Of a DNA stretch of 64,000 bases, positions 81 to 60,000 are shown in pieces (position 1 is the stretch's first letter; each line of letters begins with the position of its first letter). The stretch spans positions 27,466,001 to 27,530,000 of the forward strand of contig NC_059436.1 of NCBI RefSeq assembly GCF_021028975.2, given 5' to 3'. The notes under the pieces were generated by a model, which made no database searches, was not told the DNA's origin, and saw nothing but the letters and a program-made list of their open reading frames with translations. The DNA is from Sphaerodactylus townsendi. Lineage: Eukaryota. The translations under genes and the position numbers were made by a program.

Positions 81-2055
81 GGTGTTCAGATAAAAAGGTG
101 GCCATCCCTGTTTTGAATGATCATCTGAACGTGTTAGTGCCATTCCAAATAACCGGTACAGAACCTCAGTCCTCAACTAGATTGTATAGTGTAAGTGTTC
201 ACGTGAATAGTCCTTTTAAAATGGTGCTTCTTGCGTACAAAAAAATGTTGGAAATTATATCCTACTCACCTTTCCCAAGTGATGTACGTTAAATGGGTAT
301 TGTTAATCAAACCATTATTAAATCGAGACAATACTATTATAGTCAAATCCCTCAAGACTAGATACATGACATGACATTCCTAATTCAGTATTCCTATTAG
401 ATGGGCTAGTTTTCATGGAAATTCAGGAGCTAAACCCACTGGAACAATCAGTACATCTTTGTCCAATAACAGTTTTGGTTTGGCTGATTGAAATGACATT
501 GTAGCCAGCTTTTGAGTGGCACAGAACATTTTGTCAGCCAAAGAACAGAACATCTGCTGAAATACAGCCTGCACTTAACATCACATTTATGAGTTTCAAA
601 GGATGGTAATAAATAATAATTTATTATTATGTTGTTATCCCTGTAGTATTTGGGGGGGGGGGGCATGCCATTTGAATGTTGTGCTTCCTGCACCAAAATT
701 TCTTGGGGCCACAACTTTCACAATCTTGCTGCACTAACTAGTCAAGCATTTCATCTGAAACATTTGGAATTGCAGCTGCTATATTAAGAAGCAATTCCAT
801 CTGCGGTGTACGTGTGTGAGGACTCACTTAAGACAGGCTTTTGACAATTCTGCCTTCAGAGAACCATTTCCAAATCGACACATCTGCCAGTGAACTCCTA
901 TGTATCTACCATGGAACTCTAGTGCAAGAGCCCGTAACAGATAAATTGCAAATTATCAGTAGGTTATAGGCTGCTGAGGGTTTGCTTGTGCAGCCCCTAC
1001 AAAATCCATAATAAGATCATGAGAAGGAATGTTCTTGCAAAACCAAACAGACACAGGAAGGCTCTGTCAACTCACTTGATATTCTTATATTCACGAATAT
1101 TTATAACAATATTTTAGACATGAGAGATATTTCTGTTACTCAGAATGAGCTCTTACTGAAAAGTTTGCAGACGTTTACTGTGGCGCATTGGGCTGGAGCC
1201 CATGGAAGAAAGCCCCCCCCCCCCACACAAAGGATGAGGCTATTTTTATTGCTCCCCTCCCCCCACCCCCACAGCTGAACTCCCCTGCCACTCTGCTCTT
1301 AGAGGTCTCCTGTCTACCAAGAGCAGCATTTGGAGGGGGAGGGAAGTCCCCCTCTGTGCACAGAATTTGGTGGGATCCAGGCCACTGTGTCCCAGAGTAT
1401 TCTGCATAGTGGATCAGACTGGGCCTCTCTGTAGACCCATCTGAAAGGGCATCACTGCTTCAAAAACACCCATAACTGTCCCATAATTGCTCCATGCAGG
1501 GGAAAGGTGGTGGGCAAGCTGCTTCTAAGGAAATTTGACCACTGTTAGTGCCTTCTCATGAAGGAGGCTCATGAAGGAGGCTCTCTGGGGCACCCTAGAA
1601 TAGAGTTGGAAAACAACTTTCCTTTACAGAATACAGATGAACTATTTAAGATTTCTCAGTTTCACTGAGTGACACATCCCCCTAAATGAGTTCGTTTTCT
1701 GCACAAAATCTCAGTTACAGTCTCCATATATTTCACCTAAATTACCTAACAAGCTTCCAAAGCTCCTACGGAGGGGCGTCTTAGGACAGCAAAGACCACA
1801 ACATGCAATCCTCCAATAGTCTGAGTCATCCCCTATCTCTGCCATCAGTGTCTATACTTGACCTACAGGCCATCTGACAAAAAGCAAGGTGCCCCAATTT
1901 CCGATGATCCCTGACAAGAGTAAAGCGTGGGGGTAGGAGGTGAAGGTACCACAAGATCTGAAAATGTCTTAGTAGCCGAAACATACTCTGCCTTGCCCAG
2001 GGCTGGAGAAGGAGGTTTCTTTGCTGTTTGAAGGCACTGCATGGACTCCTGGCAG

Positions 2056-3150
2056 TCAGGCATTGGTTCCTCCACTTTGGAGTGAGGCCTTGGAGATCTC
2101 AGTGCTGACAGTGGAGAGGGGGAAACTCTCATACTTGTCCTTCTCACTATTGCAGCTGCAGCGATACAGCAAGGCCTTGACCTCCTTCTGGAAATTGCTG
2201 TTGAGGAACCCGTAAATGATGGGATTGATGCAAGTAGAAGCCATGGCTGTGAGATGACAGAGAGAGAAGATGAAGTTGTGGTAGCACACAGAGATTTTCT
2301 CGTGGTCCCAGTCATAGAGGGCATTGAAGACCGTGAGGGGAAGCCAACAAGCGGCAAAAGCAACAACGATGCAGGCCAACATGATGTTGACCCTCTTGTG
2401 GCTAGTGGCCCGGGAGCCGTCCTTGGCCCGTTCCACCATGTCCTTGCGGCGTTGAAGACGTAAGAAGATGCGGAAATAGCAGGCCATGATCAGGATTAGA
2501 GGCAGGCAGTACTGGAAAAGGAAGAGGAAGATGGTGTAGGCCAGGCGGTGATGGTTGGATGGCCAGCTCTCGATGCAGATCATGTGGTCATCAAAGTTAC
2601 CAAAGGAGAGGTTGAGGTTCTGAAAGGGTTGGGTCAGTATGTTAAAGGAGAGAAAGGGCAATGAAATGAAGCAGGCTACTACCCAGGTAAGGGCTACTGC
2701 AAGATAGGCATGGTTCGCTGCTGGCTTCCACCCGGTAGGGTTGATAATGAGCTGGTGCCTCTCCAGGGCAATCCAGACAAGGGAGAGGATGGAGACAGTG
2801 ACAGAAATGCACTGGACGAAGGGGCTGGCCTTGCAGAGCACTTCTCCTAGGATCCAGCGGTCCATCAAGGTGTAAATGACAGTGATGGGCATGCAGACAA
2901 GCGACATGAGGATGTCAGAGCAGGAGAGGTTGGCAATGAAGATATTGGTGACATTCCTCATCTCCTTTTGTTGGATGATGACGCAGACTAGGCAGAGGTT
3001 CCCAATCAGCCCCACAGCTATGAGTGTGCTGTAGGCCACTATCAGGAAGGTGCCATTCCCCACAGAGTCACTGCTGCACACTTCTGTTTCCTCCAGCCGA
3101 CTCAATAGCTCAGACAAGTTCAAGTACAGGAGATTCCTCAGCTGGCCCAT
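2056..3150 (-). CDS. NPY8R: Neuropeptide Y receptor, Y1 subfamily, Y8-type (364 aa, single coding exon)
   Basis: Intact 7TM ORF with Kozak gccATGg and an in-frame TGA upstream. Class A motifs GN, LSxSD, ERH (as in Y1-subfamily receptors), CWLP and NPIIY; Asp6.59 (ALYDWD); C-tail [12 protein letters not shown]. Segments [41 protein letters not shown] and [17 protein letters not shown] match teleost Y8 as I recall it. No coding intron, unlike Y1. Confidence 0.88.
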
Positions 3151-3579
3151 GGCACTTTCCTCTCCTGCAAGAGTAGGAGGGCAGTTCTTCTCTGGAGTCG
3201 GCTGTGAACAATGCTGGCAGTGGCTGTATAGCTTTGCTGAACGTCCACGTTGTTGTGCTCACCCCGGAACCGGCCCTGCATCAAGGAAGAAGATGCACAG
3301 GGATTAGGAGACATTTGCAGAACTTTCTGCGCACATATATTTTATTTATTTATTTGTTCTACTTGATATACTGCCCAACCCCCGAAGGGCTCTATTGGTC
3401 TTGTGCTTAAATGATCCCACCCTATCTTAGAGGCTCGAGGTTAACTGAGAATACCGCTCTGTAAGTGGAGTTACACCTATCCGCTGATTACCATTTATGG
3501 TAAAGACACATTTTGGCTGCAATCCTGAGAACACTATCCTGACAGTAAGGCCCAGTGAAAAAAATAGGATTTGCTTCTA

Positions 3580-3911
3580 AGAAGAATAAGAGGAGGAGAA
3601 AGAAGAGGAGGAGGAAGAGGAGGAGGAGTTGGATTTATATCCCACCTTTCTCTCCTGTAAGGAGACTCAAGGTGGCTTACAAGCTCCTTTCCCTTCCTCT
3701 CCCCACAACAGACACCTTGTGAGGTCGGTGGGGCTGAGAGAGTTCCGAAGAACTGTGACTAGTCCAAGGTCACCGAGCAGGAATGCAGGAGTGCAGAAAC
3801 ACATCTGGTTCACCAGATAAGCCTCCGCCACTCAGATGGAGGAGTGGGGAATCCAACCCGCTTTTCCAGATTAGAAACCACCAGCTCTTAACCACTACGC
3901 CACGCTGGCCA
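3580..3911 (-). mobile_element. Full-length tRNA-derived SINE (Squam3-like) with simple-repeat tail
   Basis: Pol III A/B boxes; roughly 90% identical by eye to the copy at 4503-4797; (GAA/GAG)n tail at 3580-3628. Confidence 0.8.
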
Positions 3912-4091
3912 GCTCCTTCATCCTGCTTAGGCTTGTTCCCTTTAAGAGCAGGTTCTTCCCCCTCAGTGAAGCACAGTCCCCATTCATTTCAATGGCTCAG
4001 TCAATTGTTCTGCTGATTTATGAACTTTTTCCAGACAAGACTATTTTTTCCCTTTTACCCAATAGAGTTGCGCTCGTTATGCATCCGTGAG

Positions 4092-4356
4092 AACCAGAGT
4101 GGTGTAGTGGTTAACGAGTCGGACTAGGAACCTGAGAAACCAAGGTTCAAATCCCCACTCACGCCACTGAAGCTTGCAGGGTACCTTTGGGCCAGCCACA
4201 CAATCTCACCCTGATCCTGGCTAGTATATGGATGGCAAAGCGCCAAGGAACACCATGGTCGTGATTTGGAGGCAGGCAATGGCAAACCACCTCTGAACAG
4301 TCTCTGGCCTTTAACACCCTCAGGGTTGCCATCACTCAGCTGAGACTTGACAGCAA
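4092..4356 (+). mobile_element. Composite SINE: tRNA head + 5S-like segment + Sauria/RTE-type tail
   Basis: gtggtgtagtggttaa..ggttcaaatccc; then cctggctagtatatggatgg (5S-like); then ggcaatggcaaaccacctctg..gggttgccat..gacttgacagca. Confidence 0.6.
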
Positions 4357-4502
4357 AAAAACCCCCCAGGCATCCATATTCTATAGCTCTGTAAACAGTT
4401 GCTCTCCTGTGATTAATATCTGTTGTCGTGGCTCCTGATATTAGTCCTGCACGAAGGGCTGTCATAAAAGGTATATCATGTTTTTTGCAACAATACTTAG
4501 TC

Positions 4503-4797
4503 ACTGGTGTAGTGGTTAAGAGCAAGTGGATTCTAATCTAATCTGGAGAACCGGGTTTGATTCCCCACTCCTCCACCTGAGTGACAGAGGCTTATCTGGT
4601 GAACCAGATGTGTTTCTGCACTCCTACATTCCTACTGGGTGATTGTGGGCTAGTCACAGTTCTTCAGAACTCTCTCAGCCCCACCTATCTCGCAAGGTGT
4701 CTGTTGTGGGAAGAGGAAGGGAAAGGAGTTTGTAAGCCACCTTGAGTCTCCTTACAGGAGAGAAAGGTGGGATATAAATCCAAACTCCTTTTCTTCT
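4503..4797 (+). mobile_element. Full-length tRNA-derived SINE (Squam3-like)
   Basis: tggtgtagtggttaagagc..gggtttgattcccc..ggatataaatccaaactc; inverted partner of 3580-3911. Confidence 0.8.
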
Positions 4798-6199
4798 CCC
4801 CACCCCATCCAACACATCAGCTGTGATGATAATACAGTTCTACTAATAGCTGATGAAGCTAAAATCTCATGATTTGTTCATTTAAAAAAAGAATCTTACA
4901 GGTGGGACTAGATTTTCTTAATAATGCAATGCAGATGCCTTCCAAATAAGTCCACAAAAGATAACATCAAAGATAACATTAGTTTGCTAGCCTGCCTGCT
5001 TTGTGAGAGGCATTCATACAGCTGCAAGGGGACTCTTTCACTTACCAGGAAAGTTCTTGCTGCCTTGGACAGGTGCTGATAGCCAGGAGCAAGCTGAACC
5101 TGGGCTTGGTAGAATCGCCAGAGGCTAGGACGTGGCTGGTAGCAGTGCTCGGCTGCTACTGGCATGGGCGGAGGTGACCAGCGAGCCTATGTGTCATCAT
5201 CACTACCATAGCCCAGACCTGAATTAAGCAATCAGCACTTTAGGGACCACTCAACTCAGCCTACTCCTGGGCTGTTTGAATCCACCCCTGTATTTACTTG
5301 CAGCGCATCAGACCCCTGCAAGAAAAAACAGAATAAACTCCCTTCCTGTCTGTACCTTCTGTATCTGGTCACTTGGAGGAGTTCCTTATTCTTCATCACA
5401 GGTGAGCAGCTCTTTACAAAGCTACATACTATGGAGACATAAATGTCACAGGTAGCTACTGTGTGGTCCACTCCTCAGCAGCAAGTCGCACCAGCTCTGT
5501 CCTCTCCACAGACCTTTGCGCCTGCTGCCTTGAATGCAGTTTTGAGAGTACTTATTAATTCTAGCAGCACCGTTGCCTCCTCACCAGTGAAATACAGGAT
5601 GCTCCCGAATTATTATTCTTTTAAGAGAGCGAAGTCCAACAAAATTCCCCCCTTTTCCTGCCTCCACCGTTTTTGGGAGCTTTTGCACCCCTCCCCCCCC
5701 TCCAGCACTGCAGTTCACACCCCACCCTTTGAAGCTGCAAAGGACTTTTCCTCCATCCTCTTGTAGGATGATGACTCTAGCTGCTTCGAACAGGCAAAGG
5801 AAAGGGTGAAAGGGCGCAAAGTACAATTTCGGCTTGGCACCGTCTTGTAACTGACTGGCCTTGGAGTTCACTGCTGGGCGGCAGGTTTCTTTCTCTCCAC
5901 CCCATGGCCTCTACCAACCAGTGCCCAGATGGGTATGTTGCTGTGTGGCAGACCTCTTGACACGTACGTTTTCTGGAGTTGGTCTCAATTCCTCAGCTCA
6001 GCACCCGTTTTAGGACTGGAAGAAACTGGGGCACCCCCGGGGCGGGGCGGGGGGGGGGGTTGGCAACACGGAAAACGCATATTACATAACTTACAGAGAT
6101 GTTGCCACAAGGGGAAAAGTGGGAATGGCACTGATCCCTCAAACGGATGGGCAGATGAGATGGATGGACGAAAGCCAGGGCTCAGGACAGGTAGATGGT

Positions 6200-6930
6200 G
6201 CGCACCTCCCCAAACACACACGCACGCACACACGCCCCCCCCCCTCACCTAAGATCCAGCACTGGTTCCTAGCCCAGAGCGTGACATCAGGTCCAGACCT
6301 CGCTCTCTCGTCCTCCCTGCAAGACGGATCTGCTCGGAATGCTGTTGGCGCGGCTGCTTCTCCCGCACACCTTCCCGGTGCACGTGAGCGCGTCTGCCAG
6401 GTCCGGGTCCCTCCTTCTGCTTTTTCTTCCACGCCCCCTGCAGCTCCGGATTGGGGAGAAGGGGAGAGGGGGGCAGCAGAAGAAATGCCTTCAGAATGAA
6501 CAGGAAAGCCCCCCCCCCCCCTTCAGTCCTTCCCGCAGCTCCGCCCCTGGGCGGAGAGTGGGCCGGCTGGGGCTTCCACGGCGCCAGGCGCTCGGCTCCT
6601 GCAGAGGGGGGCGTTTGGCGCACGTGGGTACCGCTCCCGTCTCCCGCGACGCCAGGCGCCCGCGGGGAGCGCACGTGAAATGGAGAGGAGGGGGCGGAGT
6701 GGCTGCCTCATGCGGGGGCGGGGGCGGGGGCGCCCCAGATCCAGGCCGGCACATCGCAGTGGGCGCGCGGCGCGAATGGTGACTGGCCCCGGGTGCGCAA
6801 GTGAGCCCCTTGGTGGCCCAGGGAGGGGACATTTTTGCACCGAACAAGATGCTGCAAAATCCTCCTCGCGCTTCGCAAGGCGAGAGAGCGCAGTCTCCTT
6901 TGGAGAGGCATCTAGAGTGGCGCGGGAGCT
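6200..6930. promoter_or_regulatory. CpG island, likely NPY8R promoter
   Basis: Dense CpG and GC content; GC boxes near 6691-6730; CACGTG at 6381, 6621 and 6672; TGACATCA at 6282. Confidence 0.7.
6249..6600 (-). other. NPY8R: Probable untranslated exon 1 of the NPY receptor gene (5' end approximate)
   Basis: Strong donor TAG|GTGAGG at 6249/6248 inside the CpG island. Candidate acceptor tcttcttccttgatgcag|G at 3276/3275, alternative at 3165/3164. Confidence 0.5.
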
Positions 6931-7509
6931 CCTTTCTCTGGTGCAGTTCCATCCATACCGCGATACTCTGTGTTTGGGTATGAATGCTTGTGCTCCTAGT
7001 TATTCCCGTGGTCTCCCCACATCATTCCCTTCGGGGTGTCTCTCTGCAGTGGTCCCTCTGCCGTTATGTTCTGCTCACCTGGGCCCTTTGCTTGTCTCCC
7101 TCCCTCCCTGTGGCTTGCACATGGCAGCTCCTGGGCGAAGTTGCTTGCAGGTGTTTCACACAGAGATGCTCATTACTCCGTGACGCCTGGCAGTTCACAC
7201 GTGCATCCCTATGGCATGATTCCTCCTTGCTGGACCGACTCATGGAGGGATGCCCTGGGAAGACAGCCGGGCAGCTCTGGCTGCAGAAGCGCGCTTTGGA
7301 AGGCTCGTGGCTATCACTGGACGTTTGGTACCAGCTTCAGCCTCTCCCCCTGAACTTAAAAGGCACTTGTCTTTAGTTGAATGGTCCCGTTTCTTGTCTG
7401 AAATGATGCAGATTGGCATTAAAAGTGTAATGACTCATTCAGAGGCGTCAACTTCTGTGATCCTTGCTGATATCAATGAAAGTAGCTTGGAAGACAGCAG
7501 AGGGAAAGA

Positions 7510-7740
7510 ATAGATTAATAAAAGAACAGAGTTGGAAGGGACCCCAAGGGCCATCAAGTCCAACCCCCTGCAATGCAGGAACACATAATCAAAGCACTCT
7601 GAGTCCTGACAGGTGGCCATCCAACCTCTCTTTTAAAACCTCCAAAGAAGGAGACTCTACCAGAGGTAGTGCATTCCACTGTTGAACAGTCCTTCCTTTT
7701 AGGAAGCTTTTCCTGATGTTTATGTGGAGTTAGGTACTTG
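7510..7740 (-). mobile_element. CR1 LINE 3' end
   Basis: agagttggaagggacc..gccatcaagtccaacccc..ttccactgttgaacag..aggaagcttttcctgatgtt is a typical antisense CR1 terminus. Confidence 0.75.
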
Positions 7741-10669: not shown

Positions 10670-11238
10670 CTGATAACTGCTATTAGTCAAACTGATGTCA
10701 AAGGGACCGCTAGTTTAAAGGATGGCAAACCTAGACCACATGAAAGTGAGCAAGGAGCCACACTTGGAGAAGGAAGCTGCATCCACCAGCTGACTAGCAT
10801 GGAGCCAGAGATATGGAAGGAATTTCCTGCCATTCTCTTTGTGGGAGGAAGCCCAGCAGGTAAAGGATGCAGCTTGGCCGGGAAATACATCGCCAGCTGG
10901 AGGCTTGGGAAATTTCTTTAGGGGGACTTTGTCTTCCAAGAAGCCAGGAGGAAGCACAAGCAGTATGCTAATGAGAGACCATATCAAGTTCTTCTGCAAA
11001 GGGATAGATTTAATAGCTTTGAAGGAAATAGACCTAAGGTCTCCCATAGATAGTTTGTGAGCTGCCAATAGCTCACCAGCTGCAGCAGACTAGAAGCCCC
11101 AGCATCCTCTAGAAGACCCAGGAAAAGATCATTTACAGATCTTCCCTATTTTGTGTGGGTGTGTGGGTGGGTGGGTGGGGGGAGTGTTGTTCCTTGACTG
11201 GTCAGCTGATGGATTTGTTTTTGGTGCTCTTCCTAGAA

Positions 11239-24634: not shown

Positions 24635-27600
24635 CTGCCAAAAAAAAAAAGAGGAAGAGGGCGGAGTTGAAGTTGACAGCCCCAAATGATCCCTCCTGCC
24701 CCCTTTCCCCATGAGATAGGCACTGGGTAACGACATCATCCAAGTGGTCAAATGCCATCTACTCCAAATGGAAGCAGCCTGTCAAAGAACCTGGCAAGTG
24801 GCAACTTATTCATTACGACATTGAGAGCTGAACTTGGGGATTTCTATTTGGCAGGCAGGCACTCTATCCCAGGGCTATGGCCTTCCACATGGACCTCCAG
24901 GCCAACGAGTTGAGGGTATCCTGGCACCGTGGCTACAATTAATCTTTCGCAGTCAAGCCAAAACATTATACCCCCCATCCTTCCCCCATCTCATTCCTCA
25001 CCAGGATGGTACGCTGTAGGCTGGAGTTCACTCTGCGGAACATGAGCCTGCCAACTAGATTAGCAATGGTAGGGAACACCAGAGCTCCACACAGCGTGCG
25101 CGAGATGGACAGGTGGTCATTCTGGTAGCGGGACTCAGCCAGTGGTGCCTGCACAATGGGACGACTGACTCCTGAATACAGAAGAGAAAAAGATCAGGGT
25201 GTTTTAGAACTAGAACTAGGACGCCTGTGCTTTGCCTCCCATACCCAAGGTGATCCAATACTTGCCCTTTCAGCTTTTCTGAGCTGGATTACTTCCATGC
25301 TCACTACACAGCTTGGAACACCTTAAGAGCCGAGCTCTCACTCCCACCAAAACATAGCAAGTCTGCTCCTTCTGAGAATTCTGAATTTCCACTCTTACAG
25401 GCAGAGGAAGCTAGAGAGGACCACAAGCGCGGCCACAGAAATGGGTGCTCTGGCTATCTCTCTCCATCCATTCTTTATCTCCACTGCTGTCCCTTAATTT
25501 TGCCATTGCTTCTCCCCTTCCCATGGAACATTAATCACTAAGGAAAGAGAAAAGTAGAGACAAACAGCAGAACTAGAAAGGAGGTGAGGGACTCCTCTTT
25601 CTTTGTTTATCTAACTGTGATTCCCTCCTGCTTTCTCTGCTTGTTCTTTGGAATTATCAACCAGCAGAGCTGGTTGCTCTCACAAGGAGAGCACAGCTTG
25701 CCGCCCAGCTCTAATTCTTTTTCTCCTTTCTTCTTGTTTGTTACAGGTGGGCAGGTGCATGATTCCATAAACGACCAGTAAAATTAGTGGTCACTAAATT
25801 CAGCCATTCTATGAATTCCACCTGTCATTAAAACAGAAGCACCTGTAAGATCCTAGCAGTTGCAGTTGCCAAGATGTGTGAGCTATGCCAGACAACACCT
25901 CAGCAGTCAAGCAGGTTACTGAACAAAGCCTTCCAGTCCTTGGAGGATTTCCTGCCGTCCTCCCACTGTATCAGCGGTGAATGAGCATCCAAGCTTCATC
26001 GTTCTTCCAACCCTCTGATTCAAAGCAAGATGCCCAGATCAGGATCTGCTGGCAGGTAGGTAGACTCACCTGGGACCAAAGCCTGCAGAGCCTGCAGTTT
26101 GCTGGAGTACTTCCGCCAGACCCGCAGCACGTAGTCTTCCCAACGGATCATCTTGCCCAGGACCAGCATGACAGGGATGGTGGGAAGTCCCATGAGCAAG
26201 AAAAGAGGGTCTGCCCTCTCCATCACATCCAACCCCTTTTTATGGCCAACAACCTATAAAAAGAAGAGAAGGTCAATAGAAGTGGCCAACTTCCACTTCT
26301 GTCAGTTAGGAGAATGACATTTCATTCATACTGTACAAACCTTAAGACTCTCAATACAGTTTTCAAGCACAGTCTAATTTCAAGTCAGGGAACAAGATTC
26401 TCTCCAAATTGCTTTACAGTCTCCCCCAAACAATGCATTATTAAGTGACATCATCACAGAGCATGGTGCTTCGTAGAATAGCACAAACAAGGCAGATCCT
26501 GAACCAAGCAGTGTAAAGGCCAAGTCCTCATCATGCTCCTTCTTCCAAGAGAAGAATTAAAGACAAGAGAGCAAGTCCTTGGCTGAGCTACAATTTAATT
26601 GCATCACCTAGATAGTATTTTATCAACATCTAAAGATCTAATGAGCAGTCTCAACTTGCTCCAATGATTTAAAGAGTCCCCAGACTCAGCAAGATTACCA
26701 TCAGCCTGAATATCCACTGCTCTTGTTAGGTTTGGCTTTCAGAAATTAACCCAGTGCAACTGGAAAAAGATACATTTTGATAAAAACAATCTCCTTTTTT
26801 TATTACTTGCAGATTGAAGCTTGCAACCCCTCTAAACTTTCTTCGCAAGGAATCAGATTAAGATCTTGCCAGTTAACACACAAGAGTATATGCACGTGCA
26901 CACATACATTCTTTCCAGAAACCCTCGCATTACCTGCATCACAGTAACTGCCCCATAGGTAACTGCTGACCAGTATAATGTTCCCACCACAATGCCAGCT
27001 GCAGCAAAGGGGCTCACTTTGGATAAAATCCGGTCCACTTGCTGCAAGAAATAGACCAAGGGTCCTAGGAGTGGGAAATAACAAATATTAGCGCAAGCTT
27101 CTAACTTTCCTGTAATGGTCCAAGATGAAAGTAGCTTTAAGCCACAGGTGTCAAACTCGTGGCCCTCCAGATGTTATGGACTACAGTTCCCATCATCCCC
27201 TGCCAGCATGAGCAATTGGCCATGCTGGCAGGGGATGATGGGAACTGTAGTCCATAACATCTGGAGGGCTGCGAGTTTGAGCAAACAAGGTTCTTTGACA
27301 GCTAAACAGTGCTTGAATTCTAGGTTAACTTGCAAACTCAGCAAGAAAAGAGTAGTGATATCCTAGCTACTGATACATACCCAGTTTGGGGAAGACGATG
27401 TGATATTCTGTGCCACATTGTGGGCAGCTCACTCTGCCTGTGCTGTTGCCTTTCTGCTTCTCATCCAGCCAGCGCTGGAGGCAGGCCTGGTGGATCCATT
27501 TGGTAGAGCCTTTGCAACGGCAAGGACAGACCCACTCAGCAGACCGGTCATCCCCCTCTGTAGCAAAACAGACCCAGCAGTGCCTGAGAAAAGAAGACCA

Positions 27601-29841
27601 GAGAAGGAGTGAACACAAACCATCAAAAGGAATCTGTCTATTCCAGGGTTCTGCAATCTGTGGCTCTCCAGATGTTCATGGACTACAATTCCCATCAGCC
27701 CCTGCCAGCATGGCGCTATTCTATTGGCTTATGGTGTTGCTAAGATTTATCACTGAGAAGGCTTCCCAAGTGAAGGGGGACATTTTTAAAGCATTCCTTC
27801 CACGTAGCTGAATAATGACAAAATAAAGACGTTGAGATGGACCATTAGGGACTCACTCTTGTCTGAGGCACGGAGACAGGCAGGCCATTGGAAGTGGGAG
27901 GCAGCAGAGTATCTCATGATATCAAAGGAGGAACTCAGGGAGGTAAGAAGACACTTGGAACAGGCTATGAATTTCCTCTGGTGCTTCTTACAGTGGTAAA
28001 GGTAAGCAGATCTCAGCCCTGACAGTATCTGAATAGGAGTCCCGAGTAAGCTTCCCAAAAGGCGCAGAACAAAGCATCATAAATAAATGAAATTGTCGTG
28101 TATAAATTAATTACTTTTAAACATTGGGAACACCTGCATGCACTGACACTTCTGTTGTGACAGCTGAAGGGAAATTCATACTTTCCCCGCTGATGGAACT
28201 TCTGTGTCCAAAGAAAAAGTCAGCATGCAATTGATCACAAAAAGACTCCCACAAGCCAACAATTGCTAATTACATATTTAGCATAATGCAGGAGCAGTAC
28301 ATAAGCATGAACAAGCTATTTAGCCCAGGTTGGCCACTAACATTGTTGTCAAGGCCAAGTCAGAAATTTTGTCAAGCCCAGGTAACTAAGCTGGGGATGC
28401 CCCCCTGCCCAATTACCGATCATGAACCTGAGTTCTAGCCCAGTTATTCATCTGCCACAAACGGCAACTCTGTATGCTTCAGGCTAGCCTAGGTATGTAA
28501 AAGTTCAGAATAACAGTAGTACCTATCCTGTCATCCAGGCAGTGATTGGGAGAACCCATATTTAGAGATAGCCTAAATGTTTCTGAAGATTTGATTTTTC
28601 AGAATCTATTTCTGTGATTAATCATCAAGTGACAGTGTATTCCACTGACAACTTCCATGTTTGTCTCTACATCTGAAACCCATTGATCAGACATTGCAAG
28701 TTTATACAATGGGAGAGAGGAGGGAGAATGATTTTGCCCTGAAATTTCTCCATACCAAAGATCAGTGTGTTCAGATGTCAAGAGGCAGCCAGATTTAAAA
28801 TAGAAGCTGCCGCCCCTTGAGGTCTGGTATCTTCCTCAGCATTTAGTCAGCCCTTATTTCATTTCAGGGTCCACTCTTGATTTTTAAATCCTACTACATC
28901 ACAATCTTGTTGGAGCCAATTAATTTCCTCTGGACTGTGTAAAGTATCAGTCCCAACCACATTTGTGAGCAAATATAGTAGAGATACTTAGTTTAGGTCT
29001 CACCTTCAACATAAACCCACTAAGTAGTTATCAGGCGAGCTACACTTTCAGCTATACCCCAGAACCTATATGCAATTGGAGGATAATTATATTGACCTAC
29101 CTTACAGGGTTACTACAATGATTAGTGAGATAATACACCTGAAGTACTTCAAACACACAAAAATTATTTCATAAAAGCCGTGTAAATCATTGTTCTGGAA
29201 CCCGGGTATTGCAGTTTGAGTTCCAGAACAGGCCGTGGAAATATGCCTGAGGCACAGGTGTAACAACGGCACACCCAGCATACCCAGATTATACTACACA
29301 CAATTTTCTAAGCGCCCAAATGTTTTGTACTCATGATCTCCACAATCTTTTCAACAGTGCTGTTAGATAGGTCAGTATTTCTTCCCATGTTGCAGATTGT
29401 GTAGGTGTGTGTGTGGGGGTGTGTAACACAGAGGCAGCAGGACCTGCTTGAAGTCACCTAGCAAACTTTTGGTGTAGGAAACATTAAAATGGGGGCTTCA
29501 GGGTCACCAGCTCGCTCTGGAAAGCTTTGTCATTAGACACCTGAGAGCAATAAATATGGACTTCTTCGAAGTACGACTCTTTCTTCACTGAAAGAACCCT
29601 TGCATGCCCCTTCCAAGGACGCGGGACGTCTTTAACACAAACAATCAAGGCGAAAATGAAACGGAGGCAGCCGTTTTTAGAAGAGTCCAAATAAGTTTCT
29701 AGCATGCATCATTTCCCAAGACACACACACATGTTTGCTCCTACAACCAACCAACCCCCCTTTTACTGATATGACATTTAATATGCAAACCAACACACTT
29801 TACCTCTCCCATGATTCTCCGGCTGCGCCTCCCTCTGCCAT
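24464..29841 (-). CDS. MARCHF5L: MARCH5-like RING-CH E3 ubiquitin ligase (march5l-type paralogue), 298 aa; join(29804-29841,27381-27583,26934-27064,26070-26253,25002-25171,24464-24634)
   Basis: Six GT-AG exons (38, 203, 131, 184, 170, 171 nt) keep frame. RING-CH CWVC..CRC..H..C..CPQC followed by MARCH5-type TM segments. Residues HCWVC, WIHQ, WLDEKQKGNS, YFLQQVDR and YWSAVTY differ from mammalian MARCHF5 and match fish march5l as recalled. Confidence 0.9.
25002..25171 (-). CDS. MARCHF5L: MARCH5-like exon 5
   Basis: gtattcag| ... |gtgagg; encodes DHLSISRTLCGALVFPTIA...LQRTIL. Confidence 0.92.
26070..26253 (-). CDS. MARCHF5L: MARCH5-like exon 4
   Basis: tttatag| ... |gtgagt; encodes VVGHK...ERADPLFLLMGLPTIPV...ALVP. 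Confidence 0.93.
26934..27064 (-). CDS. MARCHF5L: MARCH5-like exon 3
   Basis: ctcctag| ... |gtaatg; encodes GPLVYFLQQVDR...AVTVMQ. Confidence 0.93.
27143..27280. mobile_element. Palindromic MITE (right TIR truncated)
   Basis: Arms ccctccagatgttatggactacagttcccatcatcccctgccagcatg and its reverse complement. Confidence 0.8.
27381..27583 (-). CDS. MARCHF5L: MARCH5-like exon 2 (RING-CH domain)
   Basis: ttttctcag| ... |gtatgt; encodes HCWVCFATE...YHIVFPKL. Confidence 0.93.
27644..27712. mobile_element. Half copy of the palindromic MITE
   Basis: ctccagatgttcatggactacaattcccatcagcccctgccagcatgg. Confidence 0.65.
29804..29841 (-). CDS. MARCHF5L: MARCH5-like exon 1 (MAEGGAAGESWER)
   Basis: ATG in a CpG-rich region; donor AG|gtaaag; phase 2 fits exon 2. 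Confidence 0.78.
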
Positions 29842-31155: not shown

Positions 31156-34007
31156 TTTTAATTTTTAATTTTTAAAAAGATCGTTATAGCAGGAACACAA
31201 AATTATTATAATTAAAGAATGTAATGAGCAATGACTTTGGCTGCAAAATGAAAAAAAAAGAGAAGTGCTTGGCACTTCTTTCAAACAAGAATGGATAATT
31301 GAGGAATAGCCCTCTGCAGAAGCACACAAAGTAACCATAGGGAATGAAGCATAAGGAAAAGAAGAAAAATGAGTGGGTCAGTGCTCCAGAGAAACACTGA
31401 AGAAGCTAGTGTTGTAACTGTGTTTTAAATTTTAAGAGATCAGATCTGGAGAACAAATAAGAACGAATAACAGGAAAAACACTAATATCCAAAGCTACTC
31501 AATTCCAGTATCTAGTCTCTTTATTAACAGCCCAATCCAGAGGACGGAACCAAATGGCATCTTGGAGGCAGTGGGAACCCATGCCAGTGAGTTTGCCCAC
31601 CCCACTGGCAAAAAAGGCAGCTAAATTGGCAGAGACATCAAACATGGTGGCAGGTGGTACTGCACAGTTTTGAGGCACTCAAACCCAGAAGGGTCCTCTA
31701 CTGAAACTGGTGGGGTAGAGGCATTCCTAGGGGGGGAGCCAACTTTAGTCAGCTGCCATTAGGGTTTGAACCCAAGAACCCCACCCCCCCTGACTACAGA
31801 CTTGTGCCACTGGAAAGTGTGGCATAAGTCCTTTTCTCCAATGGGGCTTCTTCGGGTGGCAGGTTTTTTTTTTCAGTTTTGCCTCCTTTCTGTGCTGTGC
31901 CCTTTGGCTCTCCCCATTGGGTTGTTAATCTGAATGAATAAATAATAGCAATTCTAGATTAAGTGGCTAGCATGGAAGTACTCTGTTGTAGCTTTCCAGT
32001 TTGTTTGTTTTTTGCCACAGTTCTTCAATGTGTATTATCCTGAACCAAAACAGAAATGTAGATTGACACTGAGAGAAACTATAGTTCCCCTACATTCACT
32101 ATTATTATCAATGTAAACTGAGATATAATATAAATTTTGACAATGTGGGAGTGAAGAACGGGATGTTGATAAGCCCTGGCAAAAAAAAGAAGCAACTATA
32201 GACTATTTAGCTCCCTTCCACACTCTCTGAGTAAAGTCTGCACACATCTTCCAGTTATACTGGGCCCACTTCCTATGTGCATACTGTGAGAAAATGAAAT
32301 TTTATTTCATAAACACACCATATTTGGAAATTTATCTGTTGTTGCTGAATATCTGAATTGGACAGCCATATAAATTGGCTTAAATACTCCTTAATTTGTC
32401 AGGTTTTCTGTCCCACCAACCTGTTTCAATACCAGGATTCATAATACAAGGGTCCCAGAAAATGTAAAATAGTATAACTAGTCACACATCTGGAATTCAT
32501 TGGGCTGGAAAATTGGGCTGAGAGATTCACCAAAGGTCATCCGATAAACTGTGTGGCTGGCAGAGCAGGAATTTGAGAGTGTGTTCCTAACATCTACATC
32601 TGTACTCCAGACATTGCATAATTTTGTGTATCTGAGTTGCTGTGAATCAAGTTTTAGTCCCATTTAAGTAAGATAAAGTGGCTTAAATTGAAATACTTGG
32701 GTAGATGAATTGCAGACTATTTGCAAATATTACATTCTTTTAAAAACAGAATGGCAAAGGTTTTGTGTCCCATCCTCCAAAGTCCACAAGAGAGGGAAAA
32801 CATTCTAATCTTGTCTCAATATACACTCCCAATAATCAAACAAAGGTAATTTTAATGCTTCCCTTTTCATTCCTATACAGTACATATTTCATTTGACTGG
32901 GGCTGGTATGTACATTCTGATTGCAAAGTTAAAAGGTCACAATAAATTGCAAGCTAAATACATACTGAAATCACTATAACCAGTGTGTTATAGCAGACAG
33001 TGTTGAACTTGGACCTGGGTTCAAATCCTTGCTCAGCATAACATACCCCACAAGGTTGCTGTGAAGGTAAAATGAGGTAGAACCATTTAAGCTGCCCTGA
33101 ACACCTTATAGTGGAATACAAAAAGGATAACTGGATTAGAGAAGACATTGGAGGGAAGAGGAATAAACCCTCCAGCATTACTCATAAATCCTCAGCCCTC
33201 ATCTTAGACTTCAACTAAGCCCAAGGTGGTGCAATTATATGCATCAGTGTATATTCTTGCCCTGTTAACCTTGCCTCTGAATCTCCCTCTCCATTTCAAT
33301 TTACATTGTAAACTCCTTGGACCGTGTTCTCTTTTATGCCCATGCTGTCCTGGCCAGTGGGGTGGGATGGCAGCTAAAAGTTTGTTATATTAGCTTTTGT
33401 ACAGTTTCTGTGGCTTCCAGTTTATTTCCAGCTCCAAGATGGACTTAGAGTTTACATATAGGAACTTGAGCTCACAGTTACAGCAGTTAAAAGGAGATTC
33501 CCCCTCACCCCCCATGATAATTTAAACAGGACATTACACGCTCCTAGAAGTGCAGGAAGGCTGTTCTGTTCTCTAGGGCTTTTTATGGCGTGCAAGTTGC
33601 AAGCATTTTCTTAAGTTGCCTGGGTACTGTGCATGTTTTAAAATTTGGAATTGCATGGTGTCATGAGCCGCAAAGTAAAGGCGGGGGAATAAATATTTAA
33701 TTTAAAAAGAGAGATTTGAATTTTTGAACACTCTACCTTGAGCAACACAGCATCTCAGGTAGGGAGGGCAGGAAGGATTTTGAAGAACTACCGGTACCAC
33801 TTTGAGTGGGGCAGCAGCCATCTAATATTACACCAGAAATGTTCTTGCCCTATGAAGAAGCTCACTGAGTTAAATGAAAACTGCAGTCTCAAACAAACAC
33901 AAGTTTTAACCGGCGCATCAGTGTAGGCAACCAGCCTCTCCCAAGCTACTGCAGCTATTGAAGCCCCCAGGTAAGCATTTTAAAGGGCAGAAAGACCGCT
34001 TCACTTT

Positions 34008-34129
34008 GGCCCCTTCTTTACATGCAGAATAATGCACTTTCAATGCACTGTGCAGAATAGCAAAATCCACTTGCAAACAATTGTGAAAGTGGACTGAAAG
34101 TGCATTATTCTGCATGTGCGAAAGGGGCC
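34008..34129. mobile_element. Harbinger-type palindromic MITE just upstream of the ACTR1B CpG island
   Basis: ggccccttc..catgcagaataatgcactttca / tgaaagtgcattattctgcatg..ggggcc; sister copy at 36944. Confidence 0.75.
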
Positions 34130-34616
34130 CCAGACTAAATTATCATTCAAGCTAACAGCCCGGCGTACCCATCTCCCATCATACCGGACTGGACTCAAAG
34201 CGAGGCCTCTGCACCTTTAAGAGCCGAGCTATGACATCACCCCGTTTCCTCCTCGACCTCGGTGTTCGCACCACTAACCTTGATTCGGAAGACCCACCTC
34301 CAAGAGCCCTGCGGACCAATAAGCGACAGCTGTCAAACCGGGAGCCGCGCCCCTGGCTAGGCGCTCCCGGCCTGAAGCCGGCTGTCACTCAGAAGGCTAG
34401 GCGCGATGCGATTGGTTGAGCGCCGAAGAGCCTGCCTTGGCTCTGCCCTTCTCCGTGGCGAAGGAAAAGGGCAGGCTAGGTTGCGCGGGGTTGGGTGGTG
34501 GTTGCCGGGCCGCAGGGAAGCCATCGCGGCGGCAGTGCGGCGTCCAGAAGGAGGGGGCGGCTGTTGGCAGCTGCGCGACTTCGGCCCGGCCAGGCTCAGC
34601 GGGGGCGGCCCCGGCC

Positions 34617-52710
<18,094 letters not shown>

Positions 52711-56895: not shown

Positions 56896-57005
56896 TTATG
56901 GCAGCTCATGTGGAACTAGCTTATAATAAGACCCACAAGAAGGGCAGCGTTGGGCTTCTCCCTTGTGCAGCCAGAACCAGATCACGGTACTGTTGTCTTC
57001 TTCAC
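56896..57005 (-). CDS. COX5B: COX5B exon 4 (to stop)
   Basis: [36 protein letters not shown]. Confidence 0.94.
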
Positions 57006-60000
57006 CTGCATTGTGGGGAAGTAACAGAAGATTAGATAGCGGCTACATGGGGAAAGAACTGTTAAAATAGACACAGTTTTGGAAGAGTGCTCTTGATTCT
57101 AAATGTGCCTTTGAATCTCAAAGTTTATGTAAACAATGATAGCCATTTAACTAACTGGCAGAAGTGATCATGGAGTTTTTCAGGTCAGTGAACAACCTAG
57201 AGCAGCTCTGCTAATAGCCCCATATCACTAGCAAACAAGGCTGTGTTCTAGGCAATAATACAAGTTTTCTTAAAATTTTATGATCACTCACTGGTTCTAG
57301 ATAGCCAGGTAAGATGCTTTTATGGCGTGATATAGTTTTGTGTACTGACCTTTGTGTGCTGGCAGGTGAACCTTACAACATGGAGCATAATTAACTTTTG
57401 CAGAGGCTACACTGCAGGTAGTATTCCTTGTGGCATTTCACAACCATATTCCTTTTTCCAAGGGAAAGCCTTCCAGACCCCAAAAGACTGCTCTTTTCCT
57501 CAACTGTGATTTCACAGGGTGACCACAGAGACACGATTCCCTTGAAATGATGTAACTACCAATCGTCACCATTAAGTGCTAAAAATACTTTGTTTACCCA
57601 AGGAGATACTTACAGATGCAGCCCACAAGCCGCTTCTCATTGATGGAAGGGACTATGTTGGGCTCTTCCTTTGTCCCAGGATAGTGTGGTGGTGGAAGAG
57701 TGCTGTATGGATCCTACAGCGAACAGGGAAGAATAAGACTGAAGAGCAATGGATAAAAAGCTAGACATCCAGAACAGGTACACCAAGGTTTCAGCAATGT
57801 ACTAATCTTCCTCTCCACTCTCAAGTTCTTAGCAGAAGATCAACCTCCAGCTTCAGACCTCAAATCTTCCTTCTGAGTCATCACACTCCAACAACAGCAC
57901 TTAGTTGGTACTTTTCTGTCATTAGCATTCTGGGTCAATATAAAAACCTAAGTGAGTCATACCCTGGCCAGCCTCGCTGCACTACAATCAGCTGCTAGTT
58001 TTTCTGATCCTGAATTAACAAAACAGGACAAGGCAACACTTCTGTTTTTTGGTTAAAGACTATGAAAGTCAGTTGGCTACTATTTACTTAAACATGCATA
58101 TGGGATGGCTGTCATTTTTCTTCCTTGCCCCATATCAGTAATTTCCTCACCAGCCCTTTCTCCATAGCTTTCATGATTTTTCTCTCCAGTCCTGTAGCCT
58201 GTTCTTCATCAGTTGGGATACCTGGGGCAGAGAAGGACAATGACTCAAAGGGCAGTTTGAGATGGAAGACCTTACTAGTCTCCTCCGCCACAAATACAAA
58301 GATGATCTTATCCATGCTTTACACACATCCGCACAAGTAATTAAAATGATCTGAGCACCACTGAACAGTCTCAGCACCCAAAACTGAATCCCAGTACTAG
58401 GCACACAGCCCAATATAAAGGTAGACACAGGAATATCTGTAGGCCTGATACCCATTTTACTATTTAATCTTAAGATACAGCACTAGATGCAACATTACAC
58501 AGAGCTCAAGGAAAGATTTGCCAGTGCCTTTCCCTCTGTACTTCAGAGAGGCATGTAGAACAGGACTGCAAGTCAGTAACACAGCTGTAGTATTTCAACA
58601 CCTTTAAAATATTTTATATACAACACATTTCAAGAGAATATCTTAATGTTGTATTCACTTGGGCTTACAGCCAGGGTTTTATATTCTCATTCTTTTACTG
58701 GTTCTAGATCTTTTCACGTGCTTTTGGAGATTTAATCCTTGAAACACTGATTTTAGGATGGTTTCTTGTTCACTTCCCCAGAAGCTATGAGAGACAGCAT
58801 ACAAAATATCTAATGATAAGCACCAACTATAATACTGGCATATGTACCAGTATGTATACTTTACCTTATGTAAGGAGTCAGTTACGAATAGCCTAAAACT
58901 ATTGCTAGTCCAGGCTAAAAAAACTAGTCAAAGAATACAGTTCTGGATCTGAAGATGAGTTCTAGCCTTACTCCAACCATGGATATACCGCATGAAAGAC
59001 CTAGGACAGTGGTGGCGAACCTATGGCACGCGTACCAGAGGCAGCACTCAGAGCCCTATTTGTGGGCATGTGCAAACAGAGTGCCTCCCCCCCACATCTA
59101 GGCTAGGCTGGGCTGCTGGGCTCGATTATTAGCATTAAACCTAAGACTTTGTTTTGGGGAAGCAGTGTAGGTAACCCTGTTAAGTGGTGTTAAACCCCAC
59201 TGATTTTCATGCGAAGAACTAAAGCGCGATCCTTTACCTGGGAGTAAGCTTGGGTGCTGGCAATGGGGCTTGCTTCTAAGTAAACCTTCCAAGGGTCGTG
59301 ATTCACCCGTTGGAAGAGTTGCACGGTTGCTTCAAAGCAAAGTCACCGACTACAACCAAGCTTACTCCTGAGTAAAGCACGGTTCAGAGCCAACCGTTTT
59401 TTCTAAACTAAAACCTCAGTATCCAGGTTAAATGGCCGTGTTGGCACTTTGCGATAAATACGTGGGTTTTGGGTTGCAATTTGGGCACTCGGTCTTGAAA
59501 AGGTTCGCCATTGCTGACCTAGGAGATGGTCTTTCAAGTAAAAAATCAAACGCTGCTGCTGCTAAACTCTTCCTAACTCAGGATCTGCTCTCCCATTTCA
59601 TCTTTGCCAGATAATAGGCTTTCCTTGAAAAATCACATTACTTCTGCACAACAGTAGCACATTACTAGTATAAAATAAATGAATAGTAGTAATCAGCAGT
59701 AAGAACAGTGGCTCTTGGAAGCACCAGGGCTGTCTTGCATTTTATAGGCCCTCAGGGAAAGCAGGGTGTGAAAGACATACACAATTGCAGAGGAGACTGT
59801 GATACTAAATCAGAGGTAAATGCCAATGTCCATTTGTTGTTATAAAAATGAACATTAATATTGTTTATTATCTTTAGTAAAACATATGTTAAATGTCCAA
59901 TAACAAATATTTATAGTTTGGTATAGTATTTATTTATTTATTTATTGACAAGTCACAAGATAAATAGATGAGCACAGGGCCCCTGTGCTCATGGGGGCCC

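Follow-up and report, generated by a model that had tools for sequence, protein, structure and literature searches.

Besides Y1, Y4 and Y6, the Y1 subfamily of NPY receptors comprises a fourth receptor, Y8, which arose in the early vertebrate genome doublings. Y8 receptors of anamniotes include those of Callorhinchus milii, Latimeria, Xenopus tropicalis and zebrafish, which has Y8a (Yc) and Y8b (Yb). The two zebrafish receptors bind NPY and both PYYs with Ki values of 0.13-0.5 nM (PMC3598007). For amniotes, published accounts either dismiss Y8 or leave its presence undecided (PMC3591787), and an avian review from 2022 confined it to frogs and teleosts. A 2019 Ensembl-based GPCR survey contains, in its supplementary count table only, an NPY8R count of 1 for coelacanth, amphibian and reptiles and a blank for birds and mammals; we read this entry from the column order and checked it against the NPY6R and NPY7R rows. 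Searching the open-access literature for npy8, NPY8R and Y8-receptor, we found no description of a reptile Y8.

Here, we analyzed a 64,000-nt stretch of the genome of the gecko Sphaerodactylus townsendi, referred to below as the window. It contains the following gene, which we identified from its ORF, its Pfam domain, its place in the tree and its omega:

2056..3150, minus strand: NPY receptor Y8 orthologue, complete single-exon CDS (364 aa plus stop)

Our reading, to which we give a probability of about 0.88, is that this gene is gecko NPY8R and that it is a working gene with an intronless CDS and a presumed Gi/o-coupled function. It falls in the same clade as the anamniote Y8 receptors named above and is 68-72% identical to them over nearly the full length. 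They share an intronless CDS, the same Cys pairs, a Y1-like pocket and the motifs NLSCSD (TM2), GN-x-TFL-x-VAYS (TM1 entry) and FPLSTV (tail). The gecko receptor differs from them in being 3-10 residues shorter, in having Asn at position 5.32 where they have Glu, and in coming from an amniote.

An intact gene of the Y8 clade

In the ORF listing, the gene begins with ATG and runs for 364 aa with zero internal stops. The only other ORF of at least 100 aa within 2056..3150 is an out-of-frame overlap of 167 aa, also on the minus strand. The product matches Pfam 7tm_1 over residues 50-313 (E 8.5e-58). Its PDB matches are led by human NPY1R (2e-120) and NPY4R (3e-116), with Y2R at 5e-54 and QRFPR and PrRPR among the distant matches. 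Judged by its sequence, the protein is a rhodopsin-like GPCR of the NPY receptor Y1 subfamily, closer to that subfamily than to Y2. Its predicted fold is certain because of the 2e-120 match to a solved Y1R.

Receptors of the Y1 subfamily have TM3-ECL2 and N-terminus-ECL3 disulfide pairs, sequons in the N-terminus and ECL2, and Cys in the cytoplasmic tail (PMC3591787). All of these are present in gecko Y8, as the usual Cys106/Cys192 pair, as Cys25 (N-terminus) and Cys289 (ECL3), as N11 (NLS), N32 (NGT) and N180 (NLS, ECL2), and as Cys331/Cys333, which are candidates for palmitoylation. There are further sequons at N66 (ICL1) and N74 (TM2), where glycosylation is not expected. Asp6.59 is D280 in the motif YDWDH, aligned to the FDW D of Y1. 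ERH replaces DRY, and NPIIY is present. Residues 340-343 are YESF, followed by a Ser/Thr-rich tail, and the start context is GCCATGG, with a purine at -3 and G at +4. The initial annotation had described an uninterrupted 364-aa Y1-subfamily receptor with a strong Kozak context, glycosylation sites at N11, N32 and in ECL2, N-terminal and ECL3 cysteines, Asp6.59, YESF and a Ser/Thr tail. The ORF, Pfam domain and PDB ranking agree on the receptor, and every one of these features was recovered. A coding intron is absent, as both gecko Y8 and 7 other reptile Y8 loci consist of a single ORF. Y1 alone has a coding intron, those of pufferfish Y8a being secondary (PMC3591787; Larsson 2008).

In a protein search, the closest matches to gecko Y8 were from squamates (81-87% identity), tuatara (81%) and turtles (67-78%). 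Amphibians (71-75%) and coelacanth and lungfish (70-71%) came next, and the matches after these lobe-fins were fish and shark proteins that their sources name Y8, Y8a or Y8b. We built two maximum likelihood trees, a quick one of 113 rows with SH-aLRT support and a careful one of 62 rows under LG+C20+F+G4, for which supports are given as UFBoot/SH-aLRT. The Y4, Y6 and Y1 seeds and the NPF-receptor outgroups came from a 50%-identity representative search, which is too coarse for subtypes. Searches from bat Y4 and mouse Y6 recovered the true Y4, Y6 and Y1 of the same reptiles, of birds and of alligators.

In the quick tree, the reptile group (SH-aLRT 99) was sister to amphibian Y8 (98) within a Y8 clade supported at 100. 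In the careful tree, the gecko protein paired with that of the gecko Heteronotia (100/99) inside squamate Y8 (100/99) and reptile Y8 (100/99). The reptile group was again sister to amphibian Y8, with tetrapod Y8 at 100/98, and the Y8 clade including the reptiles had 94/100, its UFBoot of 94 lying just below the threshold of 95. This clade comprises coelacanth (Latimeria), lungfish, amphibian, reptile, ray-finned (Y8a/Y8b) and cartilaginous fish sequences, including a Callorhinchus sequence that UniRef names Y8. Outside it, Y1 (100/99) and Y6 (100/99) formed a joint clade at 100/100 without the gecko gene, and Y4 had 88/86; each of these three clades contains squamate members of its own. The initial annotation had called the gene Y8 from sequence and proposed an ML tree of Y1, Y4, Y6 and Y8 as the check. 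The protein sits within the Y8 clade and does not group with Y4, Y6 or Y1.

Could the gene nevertheless be Y4, or a copy of Y4 that arose by duplication within reptiles ('NPY4R-2-like')? NPY4R is the name that RefSeq most often gives reptile Y8, and NCBI calls many orthologues 'type 4-2-like' or 'type 4-like'. Like gecko Y8, NPY4R (human 7x9c; Tiliqua P0383) belongs to the Y1 subfamily and has a similar length and an intronless CDS, the human Y4R match in PDB is near that of Y1R (3e-116 vs 2e-120), and the Y4 clade itself is supported only at 88/86. However, a true Y4 coexists with Y8 in Tiliqua, Anolis, Sphenodon, Pelodiscus, Pelusios and several geckos, and these reptile Y4 proteins group with bird, alligator and mammal Y4, in a clade separate from reptile Y8. 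In Tiliqua, Y1 (P0516), Y4 (P0383), Y6 (P0431) and Y8 (P0001) lie on four chromosome-scale contigs of 90, 242, 272 and 28 Mb, respectively. The geckos Eublepharis, Paroedura and Heteronotia also have true Y4 and Y8 on separate contigs, and coexistence of the paralogues was seen in part in these three and in Anolis, Sphenodon and Pelodiscus. Forcing the reptile group and Y4 into one clade was rejected (delta lnL 75, p-AU 0.0005). Finally, position 6.58 is aromatic in the gecko protein, as in Y1 and Y8, unlike the acidic residue of Y4 (E in human). Y4 identity is contradicted by the AU test, the separate Y4 genes and the aromatic 6.58 taken together, and we regard it as very improbable. We put the chance that the gene is a mislabelled Y1 or Y6 orthologue or paralogue slightly lower again. 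RefSeq names such as 'type 1-like' and even 'type 1' speak for this possibility, as does the rank of human Y1R as the top solved match. Both trees contradict it, since Y1 and Y6 have squamates of their own and their joint clade excludes the gecko gene, which also lacks the coding intron that Y1 has.

Purifying selection, ligand pocket and predicted function

Among seven squamate Y8 genes, NG86 dN/dS ranged from 0.07 to 0.12. This ratio, which had been proposed as a check on the gene across squamates, is thus far from 1. Between squamates and turtle Y8, where dS nears saturation, it was about 0.2. A GY+F3X4 codon model gave a tree-wide omega of 0.068 for Y8, and fixing omega at 1 cost 462 lnL units (likelihood ratio test, 2 delta lnL = 924). 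For the gecko window's own branch, three-point arithmetic on pairwise distances gave an omega of about 0.12. Reptile Y8 is under strong purifying selection. Compared with the ORF in the window, that of a sister species has 7 substitutions, of which 5 are synonymous and 2 non-synonymous (N334S and V104A), and no indel. The A>G change behind Val104Ala, at window position 2840 (codon 104), occurs not only in the sister species (X4) but also in one run from the gecko's own species (X3); a polymorphism that is shared or ancestral is the probable explanation.

All 28 reptile Y8 orthologues that we examined have Y2.64, Q3.32, R5.35, N6.55, an aromatic residue at 6.58 and D6.59 in the pocket, and ERH and NPxxY are present in these 28 and in the window protein. 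Q3.32, N6.55 and D6.59 have roles in the ligand pocket, and ERH and NPxxY are activation motifs (PMC9067930). In human Y1R, the aromatic 6.58, together with an acidic 5.32 and R5.35, holds Tyr1 of NPY, and in human Y4R position 6.58 is E and position 5.32 is A (PMC9067930). In our alignment, Y4 has E at 6.58 in Otolemur and D in Tiliqua. By these residues, the pocket of reptile Y8 looks Y1-like, not Y4-like, and full-length NPY or PYY should therefore be needed as the ligand. Human NPY1R (7vgx, 5zbq, 7x9a) is the best solved relative of gecko Y8, matching over residues 36-360 at E 2e-120. It shares the six pocket residues, ERH, NPxxY and a YxxPhi tail with the gecko protein, and these common features suggest full-length NPY/PYY recognition and Gi coupling. 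Human NPY1R differs in being another paralogue, the Y1 clade standing apart at 100/99, and in having F199-D200 in ECL2 where gecko Y8 has Ile-Glu. NPY4R of mammals differs in preferring PP.

One pocket position varies among reptiles. Codon 199 (window 2554-2556) encodes Asn at 5.32 in geckos, and Asn is also found in the snakes Naja and Crotalus, whereas 5.32 is Asp or Glu in other squamates, in tuatara, turtle, amphibian, coelacanth and shark Y8, and in Y1. Because the residue at 5.32 of human Y1R forms a salt bridge with the N-terminus of NPY (PMC9067930), the ligand affinity of gecko Y8 could be different.

Is the gene on its way to being lost, as it was in mammals and archosaurs? A receptor that is intact by sequence yet silent or redundant would be compatible with the long terminal branch of the window protein, which at 0.076 is about ten times that of Heteronotia (0.0065), and with the N in place of D or E at 5.32 of geckos. 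We consider such a relic improbable, as the omega of the gecko's own branch is still about 0.12, the ORF of the sister species is intact with synonymous and non-synonymous changes at 5:2, all motif residues are kept, and the gene is intact across every squamate family sampled. We find it scarcely credible that the gene stems from an assembly error or from contaminating DNA of another vertebrate, and several observations contradict this. In four whole-genome runs, which come from two related organisms, single contigs span positions 1600-3379 at a depth equal to that of the flanks. Collinearity of the Y8 flanks with three further gecko genomes extends over more than 10 kb, and protein identity to the orthologues of other geckos is 92-94%.

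How might this receptor work? By analogy with the characterized fish Y8, the gecko receptor most likely has high affinity for full-length NPY and PYY. It is most likely Gi/o-coupled and would lower cAMP, a coupling that we assume from the family. The YESF motif, which fits YxxPhi, and the Ser/Thr tail suggest arrestin-dependent internalization as in Y1. A wider but doubtful possibility is that Y8 forms a non-redundant NPY/PYY arm in ectothermic sauropsids and that its two independent losses, on the mammalian and archosaur stems, were tied to a rewiring of energy balance in lineages with endothermy in their history. This same reading would place the archosaur-stem loss after the split from turtles. 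If it were true, reptile Y8 would mediate feeding, fasting or metabolic depression, and mammals and birds would handle that function through other Y receptors or not at all.

Distribution and names of Y8 in amniotes

Y8 orthologues are annotated in more than 40 squamates, in tuatara and in four turtles. Intact annotated orthologues are found in geckos, skinks, cordylids, lacertids, teiids, an amphisbaenian, anguimorphs, iguanians and about 15 snakes. The protein encoded in the window is itself in the databases (P0520 in NCBI, UniRef and nr; on a 59.3-Mb contig) and clusters at 90% with 364-aa proteins from five other geckos (Paroedura, Gekko, Heteronotia, Eublepharis and Euleptes), to which it is 92-94% identical. 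The database names of reptile Y8 are Y1, Y1-like, Y4-like and Y4-2-like, all of them wrong or vague, and the expectation that automated annotation would mislabel the gene as Y1-like or Y4-like was borne out.

No bird, crocodilian or mammal protein was among the best 120 matches to gecko Y8 in annotated proteins, although birds and alligators do yield Y1, Y4 and Y6 there. Most likely, Y8 was kept in lepidosaurs and turtles and was lost separately on the mammalian and archosaur stems, as its presence in lepidosaurs and turtles and its absence from archosaur and mammal proteomes imply at least two losses. The initial annotation had proposed that squamates retain Y8 and that birds and mammals lost it separately, and the annotated proteins agree, with Y8 present in lepidosaurs and turtles and absent from those of birds, crocodilians and mammals.

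What does this change? Reptile Y8 already exists in databases and in one supplementary table without a published description, so our result is mostly a correction of annotation and of textbook accounts, and reptile Y8 reveals no new kind of molecule or mechanism. In the corrected distribution, Y8 is retained by Lepidosauria and Testudines and is absent from the proteomes of archosaurs and mammals. Y8 survived into amniotes, where it is strongly constrained in lepidosaurs and present in turtles. Moreover, the misleading RefSeq and UniProt names in more than 40 reptile genomes can corrupt orthology-based inference on Y1 and Y4. Geckos, anoles and turtles are amniote models for a receptor that is missing from mammals.

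The turtle sequences show peculiarities of their own. Y8 of Pelusios (P0008), Carettochelys (P0015) and Pelodiscus (P0009) has long branches and was flagged for odd amino-acid composition. In Pelusios, the N11 and N32 sequons are missing and the tail Tyr is replaced by S; in Carettochelys, the Asp of ECL1 is replaced by G and the tail Tyr by D. From these sequences, constraint on Y8 may be relaxed in turtles.

Neighbouring genes and flanking elements

Three other genes were recognized in the window, from exons and ORF motifs:

~24969..27675, minus strand: MARCH5-like (RING-CH) gene, four recognized exons
42959..45411, plus strand: ARP1 (centractin) gene, read as ACTR1B, three recognized exons
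56899..57042, minus strand: final coding exon of COX5B, in convergent orientation to ARP1 (PDB match to COX5B, 1e-19)

The exons of the MARCH5-like gene are at 27370-27675, 26856-27173, 26023-26253 and 24969-25193, the first of these encoding the RING-CH domain and matching MARCH-type RING domains in PDB. The ARP1 exons match Arp1/alpha-centractin (4.5e-40) ahead of actins (2.5e-28) in PDB, which has only the alpha form; we provisionally take the gene to be ACTR1B (beta) rather than ACTR1A (alpha) from individual residues and from its COX5B neighbour. The Y8 call had also drawn on a position beside ACTR1B and COX5B. Exons of ARP1 and COX5B are indeed present, but they lie 40-54 kb away with the MARCH5-like gene between, and the assignment of ARP1 to the beta form is provisional. 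In human, ACTR1B and COX5B are adjacent and convergent on 2q11, and their paralogues MARCH5 and ACTR1A are on Hsa10 together with NPY4R. Parts of Hsa8 and Hsa2 make up the fourth member of the human NPY-receptor paralogon, the one that lacks a receptor (Larsson 2008). This arrangement fits the argument from synteny, which we regard as suggestive.

The ±10 kb flanks of Y8 contained no recognizable neighbours in Tiliqua, Podarcis, Thamnophis, Dermochelys, Eublepharis, Paroedura, Heteronotia, Gasterosteus and Takifugu, and tblastn of the window's ARP1, COX5B and MARCH5-like exons against these nine flanks gave no match. Within 10 kb of Callorhinchus Y8 there are two neighbours, neither of them shared with the gecko window:

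L005 1-228 and 20351-21104: neighbours of Callorhinchus Y8, an UNC5-type netrin-receptor gene and the gene of a 500-aa 7TM receptor (GPCR)

Genes of these two family kinds are expected in the NPY-receptor paralogon.

Two further observations concern the ARP1 side of the window. A CpG island at about 34000-35200 (GC 0.59, o/e 0.66) lies between the MARCH5-like gene on the minus strand and ARP1 on the plus strand and is a candidate bidirectional promoter. In addition, a run of 184 N at 46716-46899 lies downstream of the three ARP1 exons, probably still inside the ARP1 gene.

Closer to Y8, the following elements flank the coding sequence:

3151..3180, minus strand: 5' UTR of 14 nt, then upstream an acceptor-like pyrimidine tract and AG (CCTCCTACTCTTGCAG/G)
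1245..2055, minus strand: candidate 3' UTR
6000..7250 (about), no strand assigned: CpG island (GC 0.63, CpG o/e 0.65, 80 CpG), 2.9-4.1 kb upstream of the ATG
7510..7728, no strand assigned: deeply conserved non-coding block of about 220 nt, just 5' of the CpG island (blastn)

The acceptor-like motif is also found at -14 in three other geckos, and a pyrimidine tract and AG are found at similar distances in Tiliqua, Podarcis and Thamnophis (a skink, a lacertid and a snake). Because this tract and AG are conserved 14 nt before the ATG, gecko Y8 likely has an intron in its 5' UTR, with a first exon predicted near the CpG island. On the other side of the gene, the first AATAAA is about 806 nt past the stop, and collinear conservation with other geckos runs through the whole of the putative 3' UTR.

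The initial annotation had credited the gene with its own CpG island. An island does exist 2.9-4.1 kb upstream, but the ORF itself is not one (GC 0.52, CpG o/e 0.31), and its ownership by Y8 is something we infer. The island is a candidate for the promoter and first non-coding exon of Y8, from which the gene would be expressed. An ORF motif scan for ARP1-, COX5B- and MARCH5-type exons only found none between the island and the 3' end of the MARCH5-like gene. The conserved block beyond the island aligns with Podarcis (76% identity, 225 nt) and with the turtle Dermochelys (78%, 76 nt), and in both species the counterpart lies at the matching position upstream of Y8. A second non-coding block at 10767-10976, about 7.7 kb upstream of the Y8 ATG, is 74% identical to Tiliqua and 73% to Podarcis and may be a distal regulatory element. 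Positions 3570-4950, which fall within the putative intron of the 5' UTR, carry very high-copy interspersed repeats, with a summed contig depth of 10^5-10^7 vs about 20-80 in the flanks, hundreds of repeat-type joints and a (CCT)n run near 4789.
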